Origin: Dimorphilus gyrociliatus
Lineage: Eukaryota; Animalia; Annelida
NCBI GenBank assembly: GCA_904063045.1
Contig: CAJFCJ010000006.1
Coordinates: 5,410,408 to 5,474,407, forward strand
Length of the DNA stretch: 64,000 nucleotides
Direction of reading: 5' to 3'
Both the position numbers and the translations under genes were made by a program. Below, piece by piece: positions 3,960 through 46,015 of this stretch (position 1 is its first letter; each line of letters opens with the position of its first letter). The notes under the pieces were generated by a model. The model was not told the DNA's origin and did not search any database. It saw only the letters and a list, made by a program, of their open reading frames with translations.

Positions 3960-9878
<5,919 letters not shown>

Positions 9879-15132: not shown

Positions 15133-15611
15133 TGTCAAGTCTTATTTCAAACTATGGTGACGTCATAGAAAAGTATTTATTAAAACTTTCGATTACGGAT
15201 AATTAGAGTATGTAATCAATATAAAAGTAGTTTAATGAATAATTCATAAGCATTAATTTCTTATTAAATAAGGGCGTTAATATGAAAAAATATTCAATAT
15301 GTTGAAATATATTGCATAATAGTCGACAATTTATTATGTGGCTTTCTATTTTGTTTGTAATGTCCTTTTTTTTATTCACTTAAAAAAAAAGGCGTCGAAT
15401 TTTTAAATAAAGGTTTGTGCAAGAGAAATTGAATTATAATAATAGAATTTATATAAAATATCTTTGGTTTCTCAAGATAGATAGATAGTTAAACAAGTGT
15501 TTTCCACCACAAGTATAGAAATTAGTTACAACATCTATTACATAAACATATATTATGTATATTATATAATCATATTTAATTATTTTTATGAATATTTTAT
15601 CTTCATCTCGT

Positions 15612-16222
15612 TCAAGCGGTATTTAATTTAATATTACAGATATTTAACGATGTTAATTCCATATCAGTACTTTCAATAGTTAAATAACGACCAGTTCGTG
15701 TTGTTCCACAATTTACTGTTATTTCGTTAGTATATGGCGGTAATCTTGGTGAGGCGCAAATAGGATTATATTTAAAACCTTTACGATATTCTAGATTTTC
15801 GAGTTCGTCACCAATTCTTACTCTCAAGTGAGGAATATTTCTGCCTACATTCAGTGAAAAAAGGAAAACTATCAGGTCGTTTCAATAATTATTAATGTTA
15901 AATAATTACTCACCTAAAATGGTCAAACTGGAAATTGTAACATTTGTATTGTAATCGACGGTCAACCATGGATAAGCTTCAAAACCAGTTTCAGCGCACG
16001 TATCACCTGAACCATCTATAGCTAAATTAGCTGTAAAGGTATTTTTCGTACTGCTCTGAAAAGTATCTATCGCTAATGAAGCTGTTCAAATAAATTGTTG
16101 AATTAATATTTCTAAACAAACACTTTCTAAGAGTTTTAATATTAAAATATATTAGATTATTAATGAAACAAACCTGCGATTAGAACAGTCAAAATCAGGC
16201 AAAATAATCCACCGTTATACAT
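15612..16222 (-). CDS. Secreted F-type lectin (fucolectin / F5/8C-like) single-domain protein, 3 exons
   Basis: Signal peptide MYNGGLFCLILTVLIA. Fucolectin-fold motifs QSST...ANLAIDG...TCAET...PWLTVD, LRVRIGD, NPIC, ITVNC, GRYLTI, LNICNI. Confidence 0.7.
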
Positions 16223-16582
16223 ATTTAATGAAACGTCTGTTCAAGACTAGGAAAATGTCTTTCGATTTATATGATAAAATCAATTTTTCGCCATGACAAT
16301 GAGTTTGACGTCAAAAGCGTCAATAACACCATCTACTTTCATTCTTTTCAAACTTTTGTTTTTTTTATATAAAAGATAGACTTTAAAGAAAAAGTTTAAG
16401 TTAATCGACTAATATATTTACTTCTTCATCAACATAAAAAACACCTTCACCGTTACTCTATTCTTCATTTCATTTAAAGTGGAATTTTTGATTGAAACTA
16501 AATTCATTTAACAATTCAAATGCATATATTGATTAAAGATTAAGATTGTTAATCGCCTTTTTTTAATGCATAATTGATAAGA

Positions 16583-17981
16583 CTATTTTCTAAAAGCTTC
16601 TGTAAATCTTCTGGTATTCGATCCCCTTGGAAAAGGCTCTAAGGAAGATACGGCGTCTATCCAATTTTCAAAATTTTTCCCATCTTTATACCAGTTAACT
16701 AATTAAAATTCAAAATGAATAGATTAATAATATGTACAGTAATTATAATTGTTATTACTTGTTTCTTCTATACCATCTTCCCATTGAACTTCTTCCTTCC
16801 ATCCTAATTCTTTAAGTTTACTCGAATCCATTGGATATCTTGGATCGTCGTAAGGCCTGTCTTCTGTATAGTTAATAAACTTATTCGCTTCCTCTCCCTC
16901 AAGTCCTTTAAGCTGTTATACACGAATAAAAAAACGTTTTCTATTATGTTTACACTGAATATAAAGAAATTTCATAACGAACTTTTTTGATGAGTAATCT
17001 TGCTAATTCGATTATAGATATGCTAAAGTCGCTGCCAATGTTATACACTTCTCCAGGTTCGCCAGAATGAAGTATAAGATCAAAAGCATTGCATAGATCT
17101 TGAGCATGAATAAAGTTCCTAATTGCTTCTCCCTTACCATATATACAACACTGTCTATCTCTTTCTAAGAGGGATATAAACTTAGGGATGACTTTTTCTG
17201 GATATTGTCTTGGACCGTAGACGTTGTGGGATCTAGTTATTATTACAGGAAATCTAAATGATTCCCAGTATGAGTAGACCATAAATTCAGCAGCAGCTTT
17301 ACTAGCAGCGTATGGATTTGTTGGCTGCAATCTTGATTTCTCGTGCAAAGCAGTTTTAGAAGATCCACCGTAAACTTCATCGGTACTCACGTGGATGAAA
17401 AGTTTCACATTAGCCTCAAATGCAGCATTGACAAGCACGTGACTGCCGTACACATTTGTCATTGTAAAATCAATAGAAGACCAAAAAGAATAATCTATAA
17501 AATAGTTTACATTTCAGAATCTTCGGTAAAATAGAATGGAATCGATCTTTTCGGTCAATGAACTAAAATTAACTTACCAACATGAGATTGTGCTGCAAAA
17601 TGTATTATGGTATCAATCTTTTCTTCTTTAAGAATATATCTAGTGAAGCTTTCTTCACAAATGTCCCCGTGAATGAATTTATAATTTTCTTCATCTTCTA
17701 TATCTTTAAGATTCTTTAGACTAGCACAATAATCTAACTAGATTAATAAAGACGTATATTATAAATAATATTCTAATTATTTATTTTATAATCGTATACT
17801 TTATCCAAGTTAATTATCCGATAATTCTTGTATTTATTAACTAATTGAAGAACAACATGAGAGCCACTAAATAAAATATATTTAGTTCATTTAAAATGTA
17901 TCATATTTAATTTAAATATGTATTAACTAACATGAAGCCGGCTCCGCCCGTTATCAAGATGTTTTTATCAAATTTAGGCAT
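16583..17981 (-). CDS. TGDS: dTDP-D-glucose 4,6-dehydratase
   Basis: [16 protein letters not shown] (Rossmann), [30 protein letters not shown] (YxxxK), [34 protein letters not shown]-like motif. Confidence 0.93.
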
Positions 17982-18340
17982 GAAATTACAAAAAAAAGAA
18001 ACACCCAGCAAAATATCGTCTGCTAATCGAAAACGGAAGTTAGGCTTACGTCAATAAGTTCAACAAGAAATTGTCTATTTAAACAATGATAATTCTAAAT
18101 AAAATTAAACTTTTCTTAGGAAAATAGAACGAGAATTAAATACATAAAAAATATTTTAAATTAAATCATCTAGCTAAATATTGATTTAACCTTCTTTTTT
18201 TTTTAAATTAAATGCTGTATTACTCTCTCTTTTCTCTTAAAACATTCACGTATAATTAGTATTATTTATAGAATATAATAAAATGTTCACAAACAAAGAG
18301 ATAGAACTTGAAAAAAGAGAAATAGGGGAAATATACTCTT

Positions 18341-19678
18341 CTATGGATTTATCACGTTAAGAATACGTAATCCAAAAAATAAAGATATTATGAGCAAAGT
18401 TAGATTTGGGAATGAATTTGAAGCATTTCCAAGAAAATTAAAAGGCATCGCGGTTGGTCCTACTTGAACTGGTCCATTAGACATATTTCTAACTCTTAAG
18501 TAGGCTGATGTAACATCTTCGCAATTACGTAAAGTTGTTAGAGCTGGAGGAGTAACAACTTCCGTAAATTGTGCTGCAGCCCTCGACACAAGAATTTTAG
18601 AAGTCGTATAGCTATCCTCGAACTGTTTGATAATAGCAGTATTGTTCGCTCTTGGAACGCAAGGAATACCAGGACCCATCCAATAATAAAAATAATTTGG
18701 GGGATCAGTAACAGGCCACAAGTACATTCCATTGTAATAAGTTCCACCTGAATAGGAATTGCCAATTCTCTCTTCAGTTTTCTTTTTATTTAGAGCGGGC
18801 AATAATCCTAAAAGTAATCCCAAAAGGAGTCCAAGTAAAGCCAAACCTAACAAAATTCCTGTAATAGCAGCACACATTCTTTTGCATCCACTTCCAGCAA
18901 CACCGTATTTTCCATGGCTTGCTGCATTCTGTATTAAAGTATAAAGTAAACATAAGTTTATTCATTTCATATGTATTACACAATCATTCAAAATTTAATT
19001 AACCTTTCCAGCATATCTTGAACCTGCATTGCAACAGGTTGGTCCAGAATCGTAATTAGTTCCATTTCTGTAGTAATTTCCATCTTTAGGTGCGTTTCCT
19101 CCGAAGCAACCCGATCCTCTATTCTGAGGAGCCTCTCTAGCATAAGTATACTTATCATTTGGACCATTACTGTAGTGACGAGGAGTGTAGTTATCGTGTG
19201 GGGGTCTATTTCCGCCATGTTCGTAGACATGCTTTTCAATTGGTCTAGGACTTCTTCCATTAGGATTTCCATTATCGTAGACATGTCTCTCTACAGGTCT
19301 AGAACTTCTCCCGTTAGGACTTCCATTTTCGTAAATGTGTTTTTCAACTGGTCTTGGATTCCTGCCATTAGGACTTCCATTTTCATAAATATGTCTCTCT
19401 ACAGGTCTGTTCGGTGGATCATCTACTACGTAGCGCTTTTCTGGTGTAGATGGCCTGCTTCTTCTCTGTGGACTATAACTTCTAGACCTTGGTCGGCCAT
19501 CTTTGTAGATGTGCTCTTCAATAACCTGTGGTCTCTGAGGAGATTCATCCCTATGAACAATAGTCTTTGTAGGTGGTCGCGACTCAAGAACAACAACTTT
19601 AGGTTTTTGCTCTGGTTGAACAACCGGCCATCTTCTGTATTGATTTGGCCAGCCGTTAGCTCCTGATGAGATCGGCAT
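18341..19678 (-). CDS. Orphan membrane protein A (~420 aa): Arg/Pro/His-rich N-terminus, Cys cluster, TM, 2-Cys ectodomain, C-terminal hydrophobic GPI-like signal
   Basis: Exon 1 19678-19004 and exon 2 18928-18341 join in phase 0. TM AITGILLGLALLGLLLGLLLGLL. C-terminus GNASNSFPNLTLLIISLFFGLRILNVINP*. No N-terminal signal peptide. Confidence 0.75.
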
Positions 19679-26345: not shown

Positions 26346-29300
26346 CTAAGATTTACTCTTTCGAATTGTCCTATCAGTTTTCGTTCGGTCGGTAACAACG
26401 CTCGTGTACTGTACAACTCCAACAGGGTTGAATAAATTATTAAGCCCTAAAGGATACCCAGGTATATTATACAAACGATTTACCCCGGAACCATTTACGG
26501 ATTCATTGCTCCTCTCTGCCATTCTCTTATCTAGGTGTTTAGGTAACTTCCACTGGGGAAGTGACAAAATTGATCGCCATTTTGGATCGACATCAAAGGC
26601 TGGATTTTGCTCCAACCACGATGTCAGCTGTCTAAGAATGGGTGCTTTTGAGCCCGTAATTCTGCGTCCAGTTTCTCTATTAATGACTGCCACATTTTCT
26701 TGACCTGTTAAAGATTCAGCGTTTGCCTTCACTGGATCAAATCTAGGCTTTCGACTTTTCTTTGAAGCTGGCTCATTAACTTGTGCAACAGAGTAGTTGG
26801 GATGTTCAATCAACCAATCCTCCAGCTCAAATTGTCTGGGAGCGTCTTCCCCTTCTAACCTTGTACCATCCTCATCATTCACGACCGAAACATGGGTGTC
26901 GGGATCAACGAACAAGCGTTGATAATCATTTGTTTCGGCGAATGTTCGCTTTCTTGCTCTTAAACTTGGACTTGAACCGTTTACTTCTGGCACATCACTG
27001 TCGCTGAGGGCTACTTCTTCAATCCTCACTGATTTATTCGCGGGTCGTTTAATTGTTAGCTTCAATGAGTCATCCTGCATGGATAAGAGTATATTATTTG
27101 AAGCGAAAAGTATAAATGCAGGCTTGGTTCTATATTAGTTCTTATTTTGATATTCTTTTCATTAATCTAAAACATTATCTGTAAACTACAACAGTTTGCA
27201 ACCTACATAGATTAAGCCAGTCTAATTTACACATATGTTAGATAAAGCTTCTGATTTAAGAAAGCGACGACAAACCTCGGCCATCTGTACACATAAATCA
27301 CTACTGTTCACCTTGCTATAGAAAGCTAGCTCATCAGCATTTGATGAGGAAGGTGAGCTGCATCTTGAATCGGAGGGATTGTATTGCATGTAAGGCCCAA
27401 CTTTTCTAGTTGTGGGCCATTCTCCTGTTGTTACGCATTCACACACATCAAGTAACCGATTAAGAATGGTTCTATCTTTCGGCCACAATTCGTTATTATT
27501 TTGCATTGGATCGAGTGCAACAGAGTCATCTTCGGAATTTTTGTTATCCTCTTTGTCATTTTCAGCTTTCATCATTCTAGCTATAGTCTCTTGTCGTTCG
27601 TTAAGTATATTCTTAATAAGTTTAAAAAATCCTAATTCTTCGTCATACACTATATTATTTTCAGTTCGTGCTAGTCCATGTTTAGCTGCACCTCTTAATA
27701 GATCCTTATCATGGGTGCCTGGTTCATACCAAGAGGGGAGTTCATTGCTACCCATGCATAATTGTAATCGTTCGTCAAGATTTGGATTCATTAAGACTTC
27801 CTCTCTAATCTTGTGTAATAATTCTACTCTCATTAGAGTGCGTGAAGCTCTTTCTTCAGATATCGGTTCAACTGAGCACTGGTTAAATATTTCAGTATCT
27901 TGTGGTTGAACTGAACGACCACATATGCATCGGCACATGGCTAAAAATGCCGTTGCGTATTCAGACATAGTGTCGTCGTATTTCTTTTCAAGCCTAGCGA
28001 GAGCTTTAAATGAATCCCATCTATAAGATCCATCTGCATTATATTCTAGACCAAATGAAGATATTACGCGGTAAAAATCAGCTTCTTCCCTTCGTGACCA
28101 TTTTTGTTTTGCGTCTAATTTCTGTTTTTCTCGCTCTTTTATTACAGCTTCTAGCCTCTCTCTCTTTTCCATCTTCTTAGCAGATTTTTGTAATTTCTCT
28201 TGCACTCTTTTATAATCTCTTTGGTAACTTGTTATTAATCGCCGTAATCTAGTGTTGAGTTCTGAAGCTGAAGGAAAAGGTAAAAATCCATTTTCATCGG
28301 CTTCCCCGGAATTTGCTTGTTCATTTATAGCCTCCGTATCTTCTCCATCGTCACCTTCCCCCTCGTCATCGTCGTCATCCTTCAATTCAGCCGCCAATGC
28401 CTTACTGTCAGGTGGCCCACATCTTTGTAAAAAGCAGAGACAAGAGTCTTGACGGATTTGATTAAACCTCTCGTAACCTATTTTTGAAAATATTTTGTTA
28501 GCAATAATATTTTTAATAATCTCTTTTAAATCCTTCCTAATTACCATGTTTAAAAACTCCTATAATTAAGGAACGATCGGCATCTTCATCCCACCAAAAC
28601 GCTGGCTTATCTCCATCAGTGCAGGGCTGGGGAATGTTGATATCATTGGAATGGAAACTTTGGAATACTTTGCTAAACTCTTCTCCAATTACTTCTTGCT
28701 TTATGTAGAATAGGAGACGAACTCGGAGGAGAACCCTAAAGAGAATATTATCATCATTACGAAAAAATCTATAAGCAACAATTAAACGGTTAAAAACGAT
28801 TTGAAAAAACTAGATATTTTCAGTTAGTTAATTTAGATCAAAACTCTCTCAACCCGTTAAAGGGAAAAAGCTCTCATGAGTAAGGAAGATCATCATATAT
28901 ATACAATAAAAAACTTAAGTGTAACGTTATTACTTACTTATTGGCATGTCGGTGTAAATGTTTTCTGTAACCCTCGTCGACTAGAACTTTTACAGGATCT
29001 TCCAACGACGAAACGTCTATCTCTTCAGCCTCTATTCTTTTCTTTCCTTTTCTTCCCCTAGGCACTGGTGCTGATAAACCAGAGTGACCCTTCTGATCAG
29101 CTCTTCCTTGTATAAGATCGGCTATAAATACTTTAATTTTATCATCCCCATGATAATGATTTAAACTATAATTCAAAATAGCAGCTGAAACTCTCTCACA
29201 ATCCTTCGAGTTCAAAGATCTTTTGAATCTGCAATGTTCCAAAACTTCTTTCCATCTTCCCCAACCGTAGATCAAAAGATATTTTTCTATCTTAAAACAT

Positions 29301-32300
29301 TCATTTCTATAATACCCTCTCGTACTATCGTCACCACTATAAGCCCTATCATCTTCCGCAGCCCTTCTTCGTGCTCTTCTAGTTGCCGCAGCCCTAGCAG
29401 CCTTTCTTCCCCTCTTACCCCTGAAGCTTATCTCGATAGCTCCATCATCCAATTCAGATTCATCACTGGTTTCTAGTTCGCTAACATCTTCAGCTCCTTC
29501 GTCGTTACCATACCTAGTCGTTTGCTTCCTACTCCGAGGTTGCTCAATAATCAATTCATTCTGTTAAAAAAAATTAAAAATAACAATTGACATGAATTTT
29601 CGTAAGAAGATTTGTCTTTTCTAAAGGTATAGATATACTCAGATCTCCAAGGTGTTAAATTGCGTCGATAAATCATACTCGACGCTTTATCATATGGAAA
29701 AATATTCTCATCATTCTTTTAGAATTTACATGGAAGATATATTTTCTTAACAAAGAAACCAACCTTATTATTTAATCCGTCAACGTCCAAATCAGCTTTC
29801 TTTGCCCATTTCTGCCAAAAGTTCGGATCATCGATTGCAATGTCACTTCTATTTCCAGATGCACTAAAAGAAGCTTTCGCAAACGTTGAATTCTTTTCAC
29901 CGCCGTCAAATTGAATAACCTGAGTTCTTCTTTGTAAAATTTGATCGATATCCTCTTCACAAAACTGATCTGCTGCTGAATCGTCATCCATAATAGCTCC
30001 GTAGGCTCCTCTTTTGAGCAGATCTTCTATTTCCTTTTTTGACAAAGTGTTAGAGTCCTTGACATTTTCCTTCATAGATTGAAGTACAGCCTTATCCAAT
30101 CCTAATTTAATTGATGCTCTATCAAACATTTCCCTTTCGTAAGAGTTTCTGGTAACAAGACGATAGACTTTCACCATTTTATTTTGACCAATTCGATGAC
30201 ATCTTGCCTGAGCTTGTAAATCGTTTTGAGGATTCCAATCAGAGTCAAAAATGATAACAGTATCGGCAGCAGTCAAGTTAATACCTAAACCTCCAGCCCT
30301 TGTACAGAGAAGAAAGACAAACCTATCCGATTCAGGTTTGCTAAATCTATCGATAGCCTCTTGCCGTAAATTCCCCCTGATTCTACCGTCTAATCTCTCA
30401 TACAAATATTTCTCATGAATTAAATAATCTTCTAAAATGTCTAAAACTCGAATCATTTGTGAGAAAATTAACACTTTGTGATTTCCTGCTTTCAATTTTG
30501 GTAGTAACTTGTCAATAAGAACAAGTTTACCGGAAGCATGCACAAGAGCTTGAAAAGCTTCGCTTGTACAATGTAAGTGCTTCCAATCCATAACTATTTG
30601 CTCTTCGGCTCCGTTGATTAAAAAAGGGTGATTACAACATTTGCGCAATTCCATCATAGTATTCATTAAATTAGGGACATTAGACGATGAAGTGCTTCCT
30701 TTGGAAAGAAATGAAAAGTTCCTCTCTAATATGGCTCGGTAGTATTTCTTTTGTATATTTGTTAATTCAACTTCTATGACAGTTTCCTCCTTAGCAGCTA
30801 AGGTCTTCTCGACATCCTCTTTAAGACGACGTAACATCATTGGTTTCAGAAGGGCTTTAAGTTTAGATACTTGACTTTCAGTCTTTAAATCACCGAAATC
30901 ATTAAGGAATGTTCCAACGTGAAAGAATCGCTGAGGTTCCAAAAAATTTAATAAGGCAAACAATTCTTCAACATTATTCTGAAGTGGAGTTCCCGTAAGT
31001 AAAACTTTATGCTCCAAACCAAAATGCTTTAAACCCTCTGACAATTTACAATTTTTGTTCTTTAATCTATGAGCTTCGTCAATCACACAAACTCTCCAAT
31101 CAAATTGTGCTAATAATTCAACATCTTGTAAAATGACTTCGTAGGTCGTTATCATCACATTAAATTTATATGCATCTGGTATTCTTTTTCCAGTAGCTGG
31201 ATCTTTATAAAACAATTCATGCTCTTGTATAATATTACGACTAACTTGTGTGCCGTGATAGACGACTGCATTTAAATCTGTCCAAGATTCAAATTCCCTT
31301 GACCAATTTCCTATTGTTGAGAGTGGGACGATAATGAGAAACGGACCTCTTATACCGTAATTAACAACTTCCTGCACGAAAGCAATACTTTGGACTGTTT
31401 TTCCCAAACCCATTTCATCGGCTAGAATGCAATTTTGGCGATTGTAATAGCAATATAGTAACCAATTAACTCCCTCAACTTGATATTCTCTTAATTCATT
31501 TCCATCCTTATATTTTGGTGAGTCTGCAATTTCAGCCCACTCATCGGAAGATGGTCTTTCTAAAGTCATTAAATCATTGGCCGGAGGTAATTCTGATAGA
31601 CGTTTATAGTCTTCAATTTTTGCAGGATCAACATCTTCGATTAATTCCCAAGTTGACTCTTCGTAAGGTAGACCACGCCATTTGACCAGATAATGTAGAA
31701 TGTCTTCACCATCGTCGCCCTTTGTTAAAGATTCATCGAGAACACGATCGACCTCAACATAATCAGGATTAAATAGTTCATCTTCATCAAGTTGCAAAAG
31801 AGCTTGGTAGTTCTGCTTCATTTTAAAACGACGGATTTTTTGACCAATGCGTTTATCAGTTATCTCTAATTCTTCCATACTTTTCCACTGGCAATGTAGG
31901 TAGGATAAATTTTTGTATTTAGCAAAATATTCCTCAACTTCAACCTCGACTGTTTCACACTCAGTTTGTTGATCACAATTGTCCCCATCAACATCAACTT
32001 CATCATCTTTCCTATCATTGTCTTCATAGGATGAGAATTTCTTTTTCAGTATTTTTCGTTTCTTTTTACGATAGCCTAAAATCTTATCAACAATAGGCGT
32101 GTCATTATCGGCTGGATTTTCGACCACCGACGTAGGATTCACATCATCTTCTTCTTCTTCCTCATCATTTTCTTCAGATAGATCAAGCTCTAATTCATCA
32201 GTATATTTTTGACGGCGCTTGTTTCGGCCCGATCTACGTTTCTACGATATAAAAATGACATTTTACTGAGTTATTTAGTCTATTTAATTGGTGTACATAC

Positions 32301-33038: not shown

Positions 33039-34951
33039 AATGCTGAGGGTCTTCTTCATACCCTTCCAAAATCCAATGAAAGATAATCGTTAATATACGA
33101 CCCTATCTTGATAGATCGAATAGTCTTAAAATGTACTATATGGCCGTATTTTGCGATTTAGTACGTAGTGCCACGACGTATTAATACGTTTCGATAGTCG
33201 CCGGTTTTCGCGCGCTGGATTGTACTCATAAATATTCATCACTGTCGTTAGAAAGATTGCTGATTGGCTAAGACTAAAGTTGGAAATTCTATTTTCAAAC
33301 ACTTATCCCTAGCGTTTTCTTTGTTGAAGTTTTACCTTAATTCACCTTTATAATAAATATTGTAGGATAATCATATGAATTAACTTATTATTGGAGCAAT
33401 TTATGATAAAAATTTATAAATATGTCTATAAGATTTATTCACAAAGTTCAACAAAAAAATATCATATAGAGTTCTTCTACTTATCATCGATTCAAAATAA
33501 GTACAGAAAATAATCACATTTATATATATGCCACACGTCATATCATTTAATCACAGTATCCTCAATATGTTAATGAAATAATTTTCAATTGATATAGCTT
33601 TGAGTTAGTGTTCAATAGTTTATTAGATATCTCCCTTTGGCAGTCGACAAGAGAAATAGAAGAACAATAAGAAAATAAAAAATTCATATTGTCTAGTACA
33701 TATATAAAAAAGAACGAAAAAATTGTATACAGAAACAATGCTTATTAATAATTAATATATAAGTTTTTAGAACGAATTCATAAAGACAAAAGTAAAAAGA
33801 AAGTAGGAGAAGTAGTAAAAGAAAAAAAAGAGAAACAAATTAATTAACTAATTAGAGCTTTCTAATATTAAAAATTCATTTCTGTTAAACTAATTAAATG
33901 CCTGTATAAAATAACTTATTATAATACGTTTCCACATCTAATTTTCTCTTGAGAAAGGAATAGTTTTTCCTTTATTATTCAGTAGAATATGTATAATAAG
34001 TGTTGGATTATTTAAATTATCTTAAGTATTCTTTCCAATTGATATAAACATAAAACCATGTATCATTAGTTAAAGTTAACTATTGAGTTTTTCTAAAAGT
34101 TCATGGTCATTTGTGCAAATCTAGGGTTTGTTTATTTATTTACTGGGTGTATTTTTTCTGTATCAGTTTATGATAAAATATGTAGCAAACAATAACTAGG
34201 TGGGATACGGGGGAAAGTAGCTCGTTTCCTTATGCTTTGTCACCATTCATTTACATGTTATTCACCCATCTCTCGAATGTCTTGATAACAACAGAATAAT
34301 AACAATAAAAAGTCATTATATAAAAGGCGGATTGTAAGAAAACTACTCCTCTTTCTTTTCCCCAAACCTATCTATATTAGTATAAGCCCATCATCTTTCA
34401 TTTTGTTTAGAGTATATAGTTATGTACTACTTTTAAGTTTTATCTTTAAAATATTGATAACAGCCTTTTATATTTGTTTTTTTTTTTACATCTAGAACAA
34501 TTTTAGCAATACTTAAATACTATTTTAGCGGATTATTTTCTCCCATTTACTCCTTTGATGCATGTAACAACTGCAGAAGTGTCTGCAATTAGTTTATATT
34601 CGGAAACAACTAACTAATGTCTAAATCTAATGACAAAACTATTATCTCTACTTACGCAATAGGCTTAATATTATAACCATAAGCATGTGATATTTTTATC
34701 TAATGCTGTTTTTCACACATATACTAATATATTTATATATATATACAGTATATAGGCCATTTAATTATTATAACGTAGTTTAAAGATACAATTTAACATT
34801 TAAATTTCTTAGACTTATCATTTACGAAACTTGAAATTTGCAATTGTTATATTCGTATTCACCTATTATAATATGTTAATGTTGGCAAAATTGTTCGCCA
34901 TTTTGAAACTAATTTGCTCTTCGAACGGTCGAAAGGTTTTATGTCATAATA

Positions 34952-37589
34952 ATGTGGCAAAGAAATCTGTCTCATATTTTAGGTATAATATAAAATCTAT
35001 TATTCTTTAAATAAATTTGCAACATCCAATAGATTCTTTCTTTTCGGGAGTCAGTGTAAACACTGGGATTTCCAAGGAGCAGAACAATTTAAATTTAAAC
35101 TCCTTCGCAACGGCAAACTTTTCAAAAAATGTAAGTCTCTTTAATAAAGTTTTTTATGGGAATATATTTTAGAATTTTTTTCCTAGAATTTCGATACCCA
35201 TTCTTGTAGAATAAGTAGTTCGTCTGAAAACGAGACTGATGATTCAGACTGTTGCCCGAGCGAATGTGAAAGTACAGTGGAATCAATTGGATTCGAGGTC
35301 GAAAACACAGATGACCGCTATGTTACCATTGCTGAAAAGATATTTCACAAAATCCTAACTGAGCATAAAGGAAAATGTTCAATTACAGAGATGTATCAGT
35401 TATTTGATGGTGTATCGCAAACTGAAGTTTATTCTACACTAAAAAAATTACCTTATATACGATTGGTACATCAAGGTGAAAAAATCTGGGTTGTTACATT
35501 TAGACGATCTATGGTAATATGCTCTAATTATGTTGGTACATCACCATGTAATCTTCAGAATTGTCAATATCTTCATATATGCAAAAATATTATTATGGAC
35601 TTTTGTCCGTTTGGTCAAAAATGCAAACTAAATCATAACATTTTCTCTGTACATAATAAAAGAATATTTGACCGAGAAAGTCTGGGATCTTTCAATGCAG
35701 CTAATATAAAGCTTCTGATTAGAAATTCCATGCCGAAAGTCTGTGAAAACTACGTGCAGAAATCGTGTGACCATATTGAATGTATGGATATTCACATATG
35801 CCCTGACCTTATAGCGCGAGGTAACAATCACAAAACTGATGGTTGTAAATTCGATCACAATCTATATAGTTCTAACATTGGAAATATCTTTGAATCCTAT
35901 AAATTAAGAATTCCGCCAAAATATAGGAGAAGGTATATTCTAGCTAAAGCAACTGCAAGAAGAGAAAAGGGAACAAAAAAAGTCACGAAACGAACACGTT
36001 CTGCATCTAAAGGCTGTAAATCCGCAATGGAGTTAAGTAGTGGGAAATTTTTAGAATGGCTGATAGTAGAAAAGAAAGGGATATGCTCTTTAGAAGCAGT
36101 TAAAACCTGTCCCTACGTTAATATACAGAAGATAGAAGAGCTCTTCAGACAGTGCCATACTCGTTTATTGCTACTACCTTTGGAGTTTAAAGATAATTGC
36201 AAAGATGTCATCGTTAAAATATATTATCCAGAATTAAAGTTATGCGCAGACTATTGCAAATCAGAGTGTTCTAGTTCAAATTGTCTAAAGATTCATGTTT
36301 GTCAAGCGTGGCTAAATGGGGCCTGTGATGTGCAAAACTGCCCTAAAAGTCACAACTTTGAAGAGCCGAGCACTTTAAAGTTAACAAGCAGGCTTGGTTT
36401 GGACAAAAATTACAAAATATCTCATATGATTTGCATTATTCAAAATACTTTTCCTGCTGTTTGTGTATCATATAATTCTGGTGCCTGTATCGCGGGTGAA
36501 AATTGTCCTTATCTTCATATTTGTGCAGATTACATGTTGAGGAGAAGACATTCTAGCTGTCAAAAGGATCACACAAACTCGTCTACTTCAACAAAGAGAA
36601 TACTTGATTATTATCGTTTATCAACATCTATTCCTCTGAATGATTCTGGATCTGTTATGATTCCCAAGTCTCTTTGGAAACAGAATGGTACAACAGAAAA
36701 CGCTGTGCTAACTAAATCACAAGAAAATATGGATAAAAACTTCTCTCATATGCTTAAACTTATAGCTACTGAAAGTGGTTTTGCTCAAGGGGTTTCCAAT
36801 ACGAAAAAGAAAAAGGCTACATTTATACCAAACATTTCTAAGGAACATGTGTCATTACCGAAGACTGGTAGTTTAGAAGAGTTAGCCCGAGCTCAAGAGG
36901 GCCACGCTTCCAAATATGGATCTACAGATAAAAATATTGAAGATGCTATTATTGATTGGCTTATAAATGACTGCGATGGTAAAGCCAAAGTTTATGAAGT
37001 TCTGCGGCAGTCATTTTGTTCCAACCTGAAGGAACCCATGGAATGGCTAAGAACAAGAAAAAGTCTGTTACTAATTGATGGTCGTGACCATATGGATAAT
37101 ACACTACAAGTTATGATGATAGGATGTCGCTTATGTATTAACCATCTAAATCCAAAAAAAGTATGCAGACATAAAGAATGTGTGTTTTTGCATCTCTGCC
37201 GGGATTTTGTTATGGATAACTGCAAGCGAAGAGTTTGTAAGATGTCTCACAATTTGTCAGATTCGCACAACAGCAATGTACTAAACAGTTTAAACTTGTC
37301 GAAGTATGGCGATAGCAAAATTAAAATGATTATTCGAAATTCGATGCCTCAATTGTGTGTCCGATATTGTATAGACAAATGTGACAGGGGCAGTTTATGT
37401 CCCTTTATTCATTATTGCCCTGAAGCCTTTAACAGTCAGCAAAATGATTGCAAGTGTAAACGCAATCATTGCTTAGAAAACAAACACAACTCTAAATTAT
37501 TTGAATTTTATAGAATTAATGAATCCTACAATGAATCAATGAAAAGAAGAATGATATTGTATGCCAGTGTCCTTACAAAAACATCTTAA
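34952..37589 (+). CDS. Protein with three tandem ZAP/PARP12-type N-terminal modules (helical subdomain + 4 CCCH fingers each), no WWE/PARP
   Basis: Exons 34952-34982, 35033-35130 and 35187-37589 splice in frame (MWQRNLSHILD...). Each module has the spacing C..C..C..HxC..C..C..H-linker-(RNS/QNT)xPxxC..C..C..HxC..H typical of the ZC3HAV1 RNA-binding domain. Confidence 0.8.
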
Positions 37590-37790
37590 GACTGCTAATA
37601 AAGTCGTTTGGAATATACTTTTGTAGAATTCTTTTCGTGTGTTAATTATACTTGATATGAATTAAAGATACACATTTTGTATTTCAATCTTTGACTTTAT
37701 CAGAAAACTATACGCCATGCATCCAATGTAGTTTGTTTAACGTAACAAAACTAAATTAACTAATATACGCCATTACGGTCAAATAAAACC

Positions 37791-38269
37791 TTATTCAAAT
37801 CGTCCCAAAATATCTCCATCTCGGAACAGAAAGTAATCCTACAGGGAAAGAGATATTAATGGCAATCTGTTTGGATGATTTAACTTTATCTTACCTTATC
37901 ATCCATAACAACCTTAGTCCCACCGTACTCTGGTAGCAAGACTTTGTCACCAATTTTTACTGTAGTAGGGATAATTTCTCCAGACTGTCAAAACAACTTG
38001 GTTTTGGACAAAATATTTAAAAACTCGAATGACTTACATCAGTTCTGAGGCCATTACCAACAGCAACAACAGTTGCTTCATTGACTTTTGCTACAGCGTT
38101 TTCTGGCAACATGATACCGCCTTTCGTTGTTGTCTCTTGCGCAAATCTTTGGACAAGGACTCTGTCGAAGAGGGGAATGAAACGCTTCAAAGCAGACTGA
38201 AAATAATAGAAAAATATATAAAGATTTACATAGCTGATTTACCACTTTAATAGAAAAAGTACTTACCAT
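37791..38269 (-). CDS. HSPE1: Mitochondrial 10 kDa co-chaperonin Hsp10
   Basis: Exon 1 is the ATG alone. Then SALKRFIPLFDRVLVQRFAQETTTKGGIMLPE, VVAVGNG, GDKVLLPEYGGTKV, DYFLFRDGDILGRFE*. Confidence 0.96.
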
Positions 38270-38775
38270 GTTTGTAGTGATTTTTACTTTGACCTCAGAT
38301 GCACGTGTTTCTCCTATAGAATGCTCGAGAAGTGACGCATGCGCATTAGCTAAGTTTGGGAGTGATCGCAATTTTTTTTCTGAAAATTCCCTTCCCCAAG
38401 CACTTATATCAACTTTTTCAACTTTTAACATAAATGTATCAATTCTTTAAAAAAGTAAATATTTTTAGTATTTGTGAAAAGTTAAAAATTCGCTATGATA
38501 ATTGTAATGTTGAAACCAACCACAGCTTCTAGAAATAATATTCTTCAGATGGATTGTACATGAAACTTATTTTGTAAAGTTAATAAACATCAGTAATCTT
38601 GCTTTATTTTACTTCAATGCAATCTTTCATTGAATAAAAAGTCATGTTTCATAACTTTTAAATGTTACATTCAAACAATATCTTTATAAAGTAGCTATCA
38701 ATTGGTATATACTGATTCGGGGCCGTATTTCTCTAATTTGCATCATGTTTCGACCTTGAACTAGAGTTTATTTCC

Positions 38776-38790
38776 GTTCGCGAACATTCG
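38776..38790. promoter_or_regulatory. Heat-shock element in the HSPE1/HSPD1 bidirectional promoter
   Basis: gTTCgcGAAcaTTCg is a perfect three-unit nTTCnnGAAnnTTCn. A second, imperfect element aGAAtgCTCgaGAAg lies at 38318-38332. Confidence 0.75.
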
Positions 38791-39032
38791 TCCGCCGGCT
38801 CTACAACTGAGAATTAATTGCTTCTTTCAGCAAGTTAAAACAGCTCTTCTCCTTACAATAGTAATCAACTAAGGTAAAAATCGAATCATAACGTTATTTT
38901 GGAATAACTTATTTAATTTGAATAAAATATCTCAGTTTTTAAATTAACCACGTGCTTTTAAGGCGAACACACTAGTTCGACATCCGCGACCTTGTTCTTG
39001 CAAAGAGAAAATTAAGTTATTTAAGCTTATAA

Positions 39033-40850
<1,818 letters not shown>

Positions 40851-43077: not shown

Positions 43078-46015
43078 ATGGTTAGATTAATTAGCTAATT
43101 GATTAATTTATTTTGAAAATATATATCTATTTGAATAAATATATAATTTAATTCCCACAGTATGGACATTTAAACGTCATAATTAAGAAATTCGTCACAG
43201 AAAGGTTCAGCAAACAGCAATGGGAAACTATTTTGTATGATTTTATTATTTGTATTATCTAAAACAATCATTAATTACAAACTATCTTATATTATTTAGT
43301 AAGAAATGCTCATTTTCTACTGATTTCAATGACAAAGAAATCTATTCTGATGAAGATACGACAAAACTGCTTGAGGAAACCACAAATGTATTGGGTAAAT
43401 TAAAAATTCAATCATTTCTCTTACTTTTTACTTTGAAGCTTTAATTCATAAGTCTAACTGTATTTCAAACCATATTAACAGGTTTCAAGAGAGAAGCTTT
43501 GATGGTCTTGTTGGGTGAATTTTATTTCGACTATATAAGAAAATTAGGCCACGATGAATTATTAAGAAACCTTGGAGCGACTTTTAAAGATTTTCTTGAA
43601 AATCTTGACTATGTTCACACTTATATGATGTCGGAATATCCTGAAATGAATAGTCCTTCTTTCAGATTGGAAGAGGATGAAAAAAATGAAAAACTTTATC
43701 TTCATTATTATTCATTTCGAAAAGGCTTTCACCCTTTAGTCATTGGTTTGTGTATGCTTATTCATGTTTATATAGCAACATAATCAATCCATTATTTTCT
43801 ATTCAGGTATTCTAAAGTCTGTCTCAAGAGTTTATTACAAACAAGATTTACTTTTTGAATTGATTTCTATTGAGAATGAGACAGTTTGTAAAAAAGCTGG
43901 CTCTACTCAGAGGGAACACGTTGTTCTTTGTATTACAACTGTTAAAGTTGAGCAAAAACCCTCAGAACCTCCACCTACCTTTGTAGCTCAAACGAGAAAA
44001 CATGGAGAAAAACAAATTTTGAAACAACATGTTGATGAAGTTGCTATTAAAATTGACAAGATTAGAAGAGAGCAGGGAGAACACGCTCTTCCTGTTAACA
44101 AAGCCAGAGCGGCTAAGGCGAAATGGAAAAGTCTTGCTCGAATGACTATGCTTTCTGGAGATTTTACTCCAGCTTTTCCCACCAACCTTGCACTAGATCC
44201 AAGTTCATTTTGCTCTACTTTCCCATACCATATGGTATTTAATAAAGATATGCATGTTGTTCACAGTGGAATAAAGATTCAAGAATGTATGCCGGGAATA
44301 AGAAGTTTGTTGGCTCGTGGTGACTTTTATTTCGATCTTCTGCACCCGCCCCAAGTTGATTTCACTTTTGTAAATATAAAAAAGTTCATTAATACTCCAT
44401 TCGTTGTACGATGCAAGAAGGCTAAGATGAAGAAAGATTGGGGATTCAGACCTCTCCTTATTCTGCGAGGTCAGATGGTACCTTTAAAGGATGAAAATTT
44501 TGTAATCTATTTGTGTTCGCCTTTTGTAAGGAGTCTAAGAGATCTTGAGTGTAGAAGAATGCACCTTGCCGATATTCCAATTCACGATGTGACAAGAGAT
44601 ATGTTATGGATGGAGCTAATAGCTCGCTATAAATTTGGTAATTTGCAAGATACTCCTCCACCGCCCGTAGAATATCCTGAAGGGGATCAACAACCTCCTA
44701 TAAAGGAACAAGACGATAAAATGATTATGCGAGAGGTTCTTGTAGCTCCTGCAATTGTCGGATCAACTGGAATAAACGAAAACCATTTAGCAGCTGAAAT
44801 GGCTAGATTACGTAACGGTTGGGACACGGAAAAGAAAAGAAATGCCGATTTGTACAGAACGTTTCTGCCTCCAAAATGTCTTGCTCAATGGGAATCTGGA
44901 CAAAATCTTGAAGCAGGCTATTACGATTCAACTACTGTACTCTTCTCAGATGTTGTTTGTTTTTCAGATATAATGGCACGGTAAGTGCAGAGGAATGATA
45001 TAAATTATATCTTTTCATTAAAAGTAACTTGTACAGGTGTAAAGCAAACGATATTGTAAATCTGTTGACGAAATTACACTGCAAATTTCGAGAAGCCTGT
45101 GAAGTGCATGAAACATTCCGAGTTGAAACTATTGGAGATGCTTATATGGTAGTTTGCGGTGTTCCAGAGCCTTTACAGTCACACGCCGAAAGAATTTGTA
45201 ATACTTCTTTAGCTATGATGCATATCGCTAAAGAATTATCTTCTCCTTACGACTACGGTGACAAATCAAAAAGTGTCAAAATAAGAATTGGCATAAATAG
45301 TGGACCAGTTACTTCCGGTGTTATTGGCGACAGAGTTCCGAGGTGAACTTTTTTTATTTAGATCTCCTTTCACTCTTCCTTTCATATTTTTTTATATAAC
45401 ACCTATATTTGTATTTAATCTTCTTCCTTTAATAGATTTACTGTTATGGGGGATACGGTAAACCTAGCCTCTAGAATGGAAAGCCATGGATTACCAAACA
45501 AAATACAATTATCTCCAAGCACATATAATCTAATTAAAGAGAAAGGATTCCGAATAGAAAAGAGGGGAGATATTGCTGTTCGAGGAGTAAAGAAGAGAAT
45601 AACAACTCATTGGTTAATGGCTAACGATAATGTTGGTCTAGCAGATGTTTTAGGAAGAAGGGTAAAGCCAAGATTAACTGGCGGGGTGGAAGTTACCTTT
45701 ATAAATGAAGGAAAACACGAACATCCACCTAATACTGCTAATTCAATAACAACTCCAGGATCAGCAGATAGTTATGACCTGATTCCTATGAGGTAATACG
45801 CCCTTGTTAATAAACATGACGTTTTTATATACAAGAAACAATTTAACAGATATAGCGACAACCCGAGATATCCTTTAAAGCCTGGAGCAAATGTTCGTCC
45901 TACTGATCTACCTAGAGCGAGATCAATGTCCACTCCTAGACCGAGAAGTGGTTCCGGTTCAAGCACCCCTAGAATCGGGACACCTAAAACCAATAGAGTC
46001 ACCCCGCATAAATAA
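43078..46015 (+). CDS. Soluble guanylyl-cyclase-like protein, beta-type (H-NOX, HNOBA/PAS, coiled coil, class III cyclase, basic S/T-rich tail)
   Basis: Exon 1 is the ATG alone, then YGHLNVII. Heme His in LDYVHTY, YxSxR in HYYSFRKG, PAS region FPYHMVFNKDM...LRGQM...YLCSP...MHLADIPIHDVTRD. Cyclase motifs LFSDVV, VETIGDAYM, IRIGINSGPV, GDTVNLASRMESHG. Confidence 0.9.

Follow-up and report, generated by a model that had tools for sequence, protein, structure and literature searches.

Described relatives of the module protein

ZAP and PARP12 have been studied almost only in vertebrates, as proteins with one RNA-binding module followed by a WWE/PARP effector. The N-terminal domain (NTD) of vertebrate ZAP (ZC3HAV1/PARP13; PDB 6uei, 6uej, 6l1w and 3u9g) is composed of a winged helix and four zinc fingers; this domain, a binder of single-stranded RNA, is enough by itself for antiviral activity (PMC8102003), and after this single module come finger 5, two WWE domains (WWE-WWE) and a PARP-like domain. 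The gene in question here, DgyrCDS5610 of the dinophilid annelid Dimorphilus gyrociliatus, was found in a 64-kb stretch of DNA (positions 5,410,408 to 5,474,407 of contig CAJFCJ010000006.1, assembly GCA_904063045.1), which is called the window below and to which its coordinates refer. The protein contained three modules only, each with the winged helix and the fingers in the same order as in ZAP, and it is a PARP-less, triplicated variant of the known PARP12/ZAP family. An earlier sequence-only reading of the window had reported this architecture; that observation was confirmed, and the interpretation attached to it was partly supported. One annelid lineage thus keeps a transcribed and intact protein made of modules only.

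As a precedent, mammalian ZC3HAV1L also lacks the effector half: it is the four-finger module alone, with neither WWE nor PARP (PMC8102003). However, ZC3HAV1L has one module instead of three and goes back to a duplication that occurred recently in mammals (PMC8102003), and the dinophilid gene is not its orthologue.

Several modules in one protein were present in cnidarians (Nematostella vectensis XP_001636351.2 / XP_032241892.1; Montipora foliosa XP_068694758-61; Acropora millepora XP_029187541.2) and in the hemichordate Ptychodera flava (XP_070560801.1). Like DgyrCDS5610, the cnidarian proteins (three modules) and the Ptychodera protein (two) carried tandem modules of ~220 aa with the same Cys/His pattern. 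The statement that ZAP and PARP12 carry one module was therefore right for vertebrates and did not extend to these animals. The cnidarian and hemichordate proteins continued into WWE and PARP, whereas the dinophilid protein did not; identity between the two groups was ~20-25%, and the dinophilid modules were without the finger-4 Cys of the family. Among lophotrochozoans, Pomacea canaliculata had two proteins with two modules and no WWE/PARP Pfam match, labelled in RefSeq either "PARP12-like" (XP_025082025.1) or "uncharacterized" (XP_025083436.1). Their PARP-less state may be an annotation artefact, since PVD35532.1, a member of the same 90% cluster, included a PARP domain.

Three complete modules in one protein

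DgyrCDS5610 (843 aa, NCBI; P0001) was 100% identical to the product of the open reading frame (ORF) 35277-37589 (+). It comprised three complete ZAP/PARP12-type N-terminal modules of ~220 residues, each with a winged helix and four CCCH-type fingers. One large exon (exon 3, 35187-37589) encoded all of them, as had been read from the sequence, and the three peptide strings quoted in that reading were all present in the ORF. The module ranges given there were close to the computed ones listed here, with the ends of modules 1 and 2 about 80 nt short.

35325-35987 (+): module 1 (residues 90-310), winged helix and fingers 1-4, net charge +17
35988-36041 (+): linker 1, basic and rich in Lys/Arg, possibly resembling a nuclear localization signal; basic in the orthologue too
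36042-36701 (+): module 2 (residues 329-548), net charge +6
36702-36929 (+): linker 2, 76 aa, with a KKKK run; poorly conserved (31% identity to the orthologue)
36930-37583 (+): module 3 (residues 625-842), net charge +12; better conserved than modules 1 and 2 in the orthologue (53% identity)

The N-terminal tail of the protein was acidic, and all three modules were basic. Pfam PF25261 (zf-CCCH_PARP12) matched in four stretches with 53.6 bits against a cut-off of 27 bits. A hidden Markov model (HMM) of the module was then built from 110 modules, all of them from other organisms so that the query was excluded and circularity prevented, and it gave three full-length matches in the protein, each covering 210-218 of 226 profile positions, with independent E-values of 2e-40 (module 1), 6.8e-37 (module 2) and 2.1e-39 (module 3). 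In an alignment of six modules, three from this protein and three from its orthologue (P0002), 19 columns were invariant and 17 of them were Cys or His. Self-comparison of the protein by BLASTP did not detect the internal repeat, and profile methods were needed because the modules were only 22-25% identical to one another. Against the sequences of the PDB, the ZAP NTD was the only real match of the module profile (6l1w, E 1.4e-19), and single modules reached the same entry by phmmer (module 1, E 1.2e-7; module 2, 6e-3; module 3, 6.5e-5).

The fold was modelled with AlphaFold2 for modules 1 and 2, the model of module 1 being built with a 116-row alignment; the mean predicted local distance difference test scores were 92.6 and 92.3. 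The comparison with the ZAP NTD proposed in the sequence-only reading was performed by Foldseek against the PDB, and both modules matched. For module 1 the top five matches were all ZAP NTD (E 5.5e-9 to 5e-7, probability 1.00, ~214 aligned columns), and the next ones (E at least 0.06) were winged-helix proteins that covered only the first ~65 residues. The top five of module 2 were also all ZAP NTD (E 1e-7, probability 1.00), and for both modules these matches were at least five orders of magnitude ahead of the next. VIA-align to the ZAP NTD gave Z 12.2 for module 1 (132 aa at 3.1 A) and Z 10.5 for module 2 (130 aa at 3.1 A), while winged-helix matches had only Z 7-8. The global template modelling (TM) score of the two modules against the ZAP NTD was only 0.43-0.50, so the arrangement of the subdomains differs somewhat from that of ZAP, which agrees with the different finger arrangements of the PARP12 and ZAP types (PMC12204182). 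The fold of module 3 was assigned from its sequence and an ESM Atlas model of residues 622-843, which matched a PF25261 cluster with TM 0.79.

Absence of WWE and PARP domains

Neither WWE nor the PARP catalytic domain (PF00644) was detected by the Pfam scan of the protein, and a fifth finger was also absent. The WWE and PARP parts of seven relatives were compared by tblastn with the window and with every retrieved locus. Nothing was found in the 64 kb of the window or in loci L001 (the orthologous locus) and L002, where the best match had E 0.8 and was noise. Identical queries detected WWE/PARP exons downstream of multi-module ORFs in two other loci (L003, E 1e-33; L004, E 1e-17), so the method works and the absence is real. 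Together with an orthologue that ended after module 3, these searches upheld the earlier statement that WWE and PARP are missing.

In these two loci the module ORFs (L003 1269-4505, three modules; L004 8001-11309, four modules) were followed by WWE/PARP exons 2.5-7 kb downstream (6949-7551 and 15165-18851), and in L004 a reverse-transcriptase ORF lay just upstream of the module ORF. Two multi-module ORFs that had been considered as further PARP-less proteins (P0008 and P0028) were rejected, as WWE/PARP exons lay downstream on their contigs. Module-only ORFs of the ENA/Logan databases can therefore be exon fragments, and those ending after the last module are probably exon fragments in general.

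Gene structure and transcription

DgyrCDS5610 is a real, expressed gene with three exons. Its annotated ATG was at 34952, where the sequence-only reading had also placed the start; the reading frame was not open from there to the ORF at 35277, and two small 5' exons were spliced on instead. The three exons, when joined and translated in a script, gave the exact protein sequence. The features of the transcript were as follows.

34952-34982 (+): exon 1, start codon and 10 codons; joint 34982/35033 in run X2
35033-35130 (+): exon 2, low-complexity N-terminal residues; joints 34982/35033 and 35130/35187 in run X2
35187-37589 (+): exon 3, terminal, with an acidic Ser-rich stretch, the three modules and the stop codon (37587-37589)
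37597-37602 (+): polyadenylation signal AATAAA, 8 nt past the stop, read from the sequence
37791-38270 (-): HSP10/HSPE1, convergent neighbour that bounds the gene; CT..AC joints 37837/37894, 37984/38038 and 38196/38267 in the same merged contig

The transcript evidence came from Logan contigs of two public runs of separate studies (X1 and X2), which were aligned to 33900-39800 of the window. One spliced contig of X2 (record 9, 3114 nt) covered 34917-34979, 35030-35130 and 35187-37837, and after the cut offset (+3) on the first joint the introns were 50 and 56 nt long, both GT..AG. Run X1, a coral-tank metatranscriptome with a Dimorphilus strain ~99% identical to the window, independently showed the joint 35130/35187 of the second intron. 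As the X2 contig began at 34917, the 5' untranslated region (UTR) was ~35 nt long, and it contained an upstream ORF of two codons at 34941.

At the other end, the X2 contig was unbroken from 35187 to 37837 and no plus-strand splice donor was used past the stop, so that splicing onward from exon 3, which the sequence-only reading had named as contrary evidence, was not seen in it. The stop at 37589 and the 3' end of HSPE1 ~200 bp away were both as had been read: AATAAA followed the stop directly, and the minus-strand stop codon of HSP10 was at 37791-37793. Because the X2 contig ran into the spliced exons of HSP10, the 3' ends of the two genes overlap or abut. The contig thus merged over 37589-37837 a plus-strand ZAP-like mRNA with a minus-strand HSP10 mRNA, in a compact genome.

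Run X1 (2024, labelled "coral metagenome") held spliced transcripts 98-99% identical to the window at 35187-37536 and 39046-39796, and therefore a Dimorphilus-like worm lived in the coral sample. A horizontal origin of the gene or contamination from coral was rejected, since the gene had the tiny GT..AG introns of this genome and a synteny conserved in two species.

Orthologue, synteny and rate of change

One orthologue (P0002, 803 aa, SRR23372228) was found, which was colinear with the Dimorphilus protein over the full length at 43% identity. A word-index protein search with P0001 returned only the query and this orthologue, and a search with a 14-sequence alignment returned 7 proteins. The order CHD / ZAP-like gene / Cpn10 / HSP60 / HNOB guanylate cyclase was shared with the orthologous locus, and in the window the syntenic genes were these.

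27222-32142 (-): CHD6-9-like helicase
37791-38270 (-): HSP10
39057-40850 (+): HSP60
43499-45796 (+): HNOB guanylate cyclase

The flanking proteins (CHD and HSP60 exons) were 91-98.5% identical between the two species, in contrast with the 43% of the ZAP-like gene. The nonsynonymous divergence (dN, Nei-Gojobori) was 0.49 for DgyrCDS5610 and 0.011-0.043 for CHD and HSP60, so the protein changed more than 10 times faster than its neighbours. The ratio of dN to synonymous divergence was not computable between the species because synonymous sites were saturated in all genes (proportion of synonymous differences, pS, 0.57-0.75). Both orthologous ORFs were nevertheless intact, identity was 39, 50 and 53% in modules 1 to 3 against 18 and 31% in the linkers, and 54 of the 82 Cys/His residues of the Dimorphilus protein were conserved in the orthologue, including the invariant ligand columns. 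This pattern argues for a selection that would keep the fold while the surfaces change fast. Against the X1 strain (~99% identical), DgyrCDS5610 had 16 nonsynonymous and 5 synonymous differences, and HSP60 had 1 and 3.

At this locus HSP10 and HSP60 were arranged head-to-head, like in most animals. HSP60 had an intron of 174 nt in its 5' UTR (38871-39046), directly ahead of the ATG at 39057, which was present in both runs. Elsewhere in the window, a tandem repeat lay at 4097-5413, where both strands had long ORFs of low complexity (LKDQEK-type and FQ/FL-type repeats).

Finger 4 and the CpG-pocket residues

The four CCCH fingers that had been read in each module were complete for fingers 1-3, whose Cys3His ligands were invariant in all modules of both species. 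For finger 4 the reading did not hold in full. The second Cys of this finger was present in 106 of 116 family modules, but none of the three modules had it in either species. A His 2-3 residues from the lost Cys was conserved in modules 1 and 2 and could substitute for it, and finger 4 of module 3 varied between the species.

CpG discrimination by ZAP needs Y108 and F144, with further contacts by K107, E148 and K151, and its finger 2 has a long C-x9-C spacing (PMC9253567). In the dinophilid modules the position of Y108 was occupied by L, K or M, the four-residue loop DPFF with F144 was deleted, and E148 and K151 were not kept; K107 was kept in modules 1 and 3 only, and finger 2 had the short C-x5-C spacing of the PARP12 type. 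On the side of the host, the CpG observed/expected (o/e) ratio of the window was 0.94 and that of four coding exons nearby was 0.62-0.90, while the genome of D. gyrociliatus has a CpG o/e of 0.9 and a negligible content of 5-methylcytosine (5mC, 0.16%) (PMC11292947). With negligible 5mC and a genome that is not CpG-depleted, CpG cannot mark non-self in this animal. The binding of CpG, which the sequence-only reading had carried over from ZAP, was rejected as unsupported on these three grounds (no pocket residues, short finger 2, host not CpG-depleted), and the motif recognised by DgyrCDS5610 is probably not CpG.

Possible function

The reading we prefer is that DgyrCDS5610 derives from a PARP12-like ancestor, whose front module was multiplied and whose half for poly(ADP-ribose) (PAR) binding and catalysis was lost. 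As for the activity, we lean towards a non-catalytic, multivalent RNA binder, probably directed against viruses or other foreign RNA, a proposal drawn by analogy that we hold with somewhat more belief than doubt. With its three basic finger modules joined by flexible linkers that are also basic, the protein would bind single-stranded RNA multivalently, and it could act without catalysis, by sequestering RNA or by recruiting partners. The extreme change of the protein beside near-invariant neighbours would fit a conflict with viruses or foreign RNA. An antiviral role may be inferred, for which the best indirect support is the very fast evolution of the protein and the induction of a Nematostella relative by cyclic GMP-AMP (cGAMP). 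That relative, XP_001636351.2, belongs to the most strongly cGAMP-induced genes (PMC11784840), and it was computed here to have three modules with WWE and PARP. A shared ancestral antiviral role has been proposed for zinc-finger PARPs (ZnF-PARPs) (PMC11784840).

Several points weigh against this proposal. Twelve canonical fingers are not assured, since finger 4 was without the second Cys in every module, and in module 3 of the orthologue only three ligands of this finger were evident. The residues for CpG specificity were not conserved. The contrast of 16:5 with 1:3 in the comparison with the X1 strain was not significant (Fisher p = 0.08) and came from low-depth contigs, so it is suggestive only. 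Reproductive genes also typically evolve fast, as do genes whose constraint is relaxed. In one study no RNA binding was detected for human PARP12, which is the closer type of paralogue (PMC8102003).

The same fold and basic charge would also suit a regulator of endogenous RNA, working on host transcripts in stress granules, translational control or germline/maternal mRNA, with reproductive or lineage-specific adaptation driving its rate. PARP12 and PARP13 act in stress-granule assembly and microRNA silencing (PMC4245714), transcripts of the gene occurred in a general transcriptome for which no challenge is known, and the self/non-self logic of ZAP would be unavailable to a protein without the CpG pocket in a host that is not CpG-depleted (PMC11292947). 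Nevertheless, housekeeping RNA regulators are usually conserved, and here the identity was 43% against 91-98% for the neighbours; the closest well-studied relatives are moreover induced by interferon or cGAMP (PMC11784840). We regard such a regulator as possible, with the doubts greater than the support. It is unlikely that the modules are a scaffold for protein, PAR or another ligand, a decoy or adaptor left from a PARP12-like gene. The non-canonical finger 4 of every module would agree with such a scaffold, and so would the binding of the C-terminal domain of KHNYN by the ZAP NTD (PDB 9bgl, among the top fold matches), but PAR binding in this family belongs to the unit of fifth finger and WWE (PMC11784840), which is absent from DgyrCDS5610, and a polyanion such as RNA is the likelier ligand for modules with net charges of +17, +6 and +12.

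The missing effector half, the lost finger-4 ligands and a ratio near 1 that the 16:5 differences from a near-identical strain would represent, could be the marks of a remnant that decays by drift under relaxed constraint. This is very unlikely in view of two 2.4-kb ORFs that stayed intact and colinear while synonymous sites became saturated, of invariant Cys/His columns in six modules, of modules better conserved (39-53%) than linkers (18-31%), and of a gene that is transcribed and spliced. Least credible of all, and largely refuted, is an incomplete gene model, with transcripts in which WWE/PARP exons would follow exon 3. Rare isoforms can be absent from contigs, and P0008 and P0028, which had no C-terminal extension either, turned out to be first exons. 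At DgyrCDS5610, however, the contig ran continuously through the stop and the adjacent AATAAA into HSP10, neither the 64 kb nor the 7 kb that follow the orthologue in its locus had any similarity to WWE/PARP while the controls were positive, and the orthologue ended at the same point.

The multivalent RNA binder preferred here has a bolder form, which we consider doubtful: an autonomous, catalysis-free pattern-recognition receptor, whose three fast-diversifying modules would clamp a non-CpG feature of foreign RNA in a host without DNA methylation. If such a receptor exists, the module would be a self-sufficient antiviral unit that can be multiplied outside vertebrates, and ZnF-PARP genes could remain in an arms race after losing their PARP half. 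Should DgyrCDS5610 bind RNA and restrict viruses, it would be a natural test of the module without ADP-ribosylation, PAR binding and CpG logic; otherwise it would be a lineage-specific domain rearrangement of the ordinary kind, in a gene that had been annotated before.

Distribution and origin of module arrays

An exhaustive profile search over 1.84 billion representatives gave 1088 hits at E <=0.001, many of which had several matched stretches, and besides the one orthologue it returned no relative of more than ~25% identity. Counted over the retrieved matches and their cluster members, full modules numbered two in 38 proteins, three in 28, four in 6 and five in 2. The named examples were as follows.

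Montipora foliosa and M. capricornis, "ZAP-like": 3 modules, WWE and PARP present
Acropora millepora, XP_029187541.2: 3 modules, WWE and PARP present
Nematostella vectensis, LOC5516216: 3 modules, WWE and PARP present
Ptychodera flava, XP_070560801.1: 2 modules, WWE and PARP present
Pomacea canaliculata, XP_025082025.1 and XP_025083436.1: 2 modules, WWE/PARP absent from the two models but included in a rival one

Module multiplication happened repeatedly in animals, and multivalent arrays are a recurrent, already sequenced feature of invertebrate ZnF-PARPs. In the literature searched, no explicit description of whole-module tandem arrays of invertebrates was found, PMC11784840 mentioning only "additional zinc-finger domains". 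The claim of an undescribed architecture was thus too wide for the tandem arrays, which are widespread among sequenced proteins, and it kept its value for the unusual loss of the PARP half. What is distinctive in the dinophilid gene is the complete loss of the half with finger 5, WWE and PARP, with support from transcript and synteny.

In the module tree most of the top matches were among coral sequences. Each module of one dinophilid paired 1:1 with its counterpart in the other (support 99-100), modules 1 and 3 were weak sisters (support 83), and the modules did not match the module positions of cnidarians. By the approximately unbiased test, monophyly of the six dinophilid modules was not rejected (p 0.48), nor was a grouping of module 1 with the first modules of cnidarians (p 0.31). 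Multiplication within the annelid lineage is favoured because all three modules share the loss of the finger-4 Cys.

Half-module arrays were also observed: five proteins (P0006, P0017, P0022, P0034 and P0046) carried 6-13 copies of the finger-1/2 pair only (profile positions ~66-140), without the winged helix.

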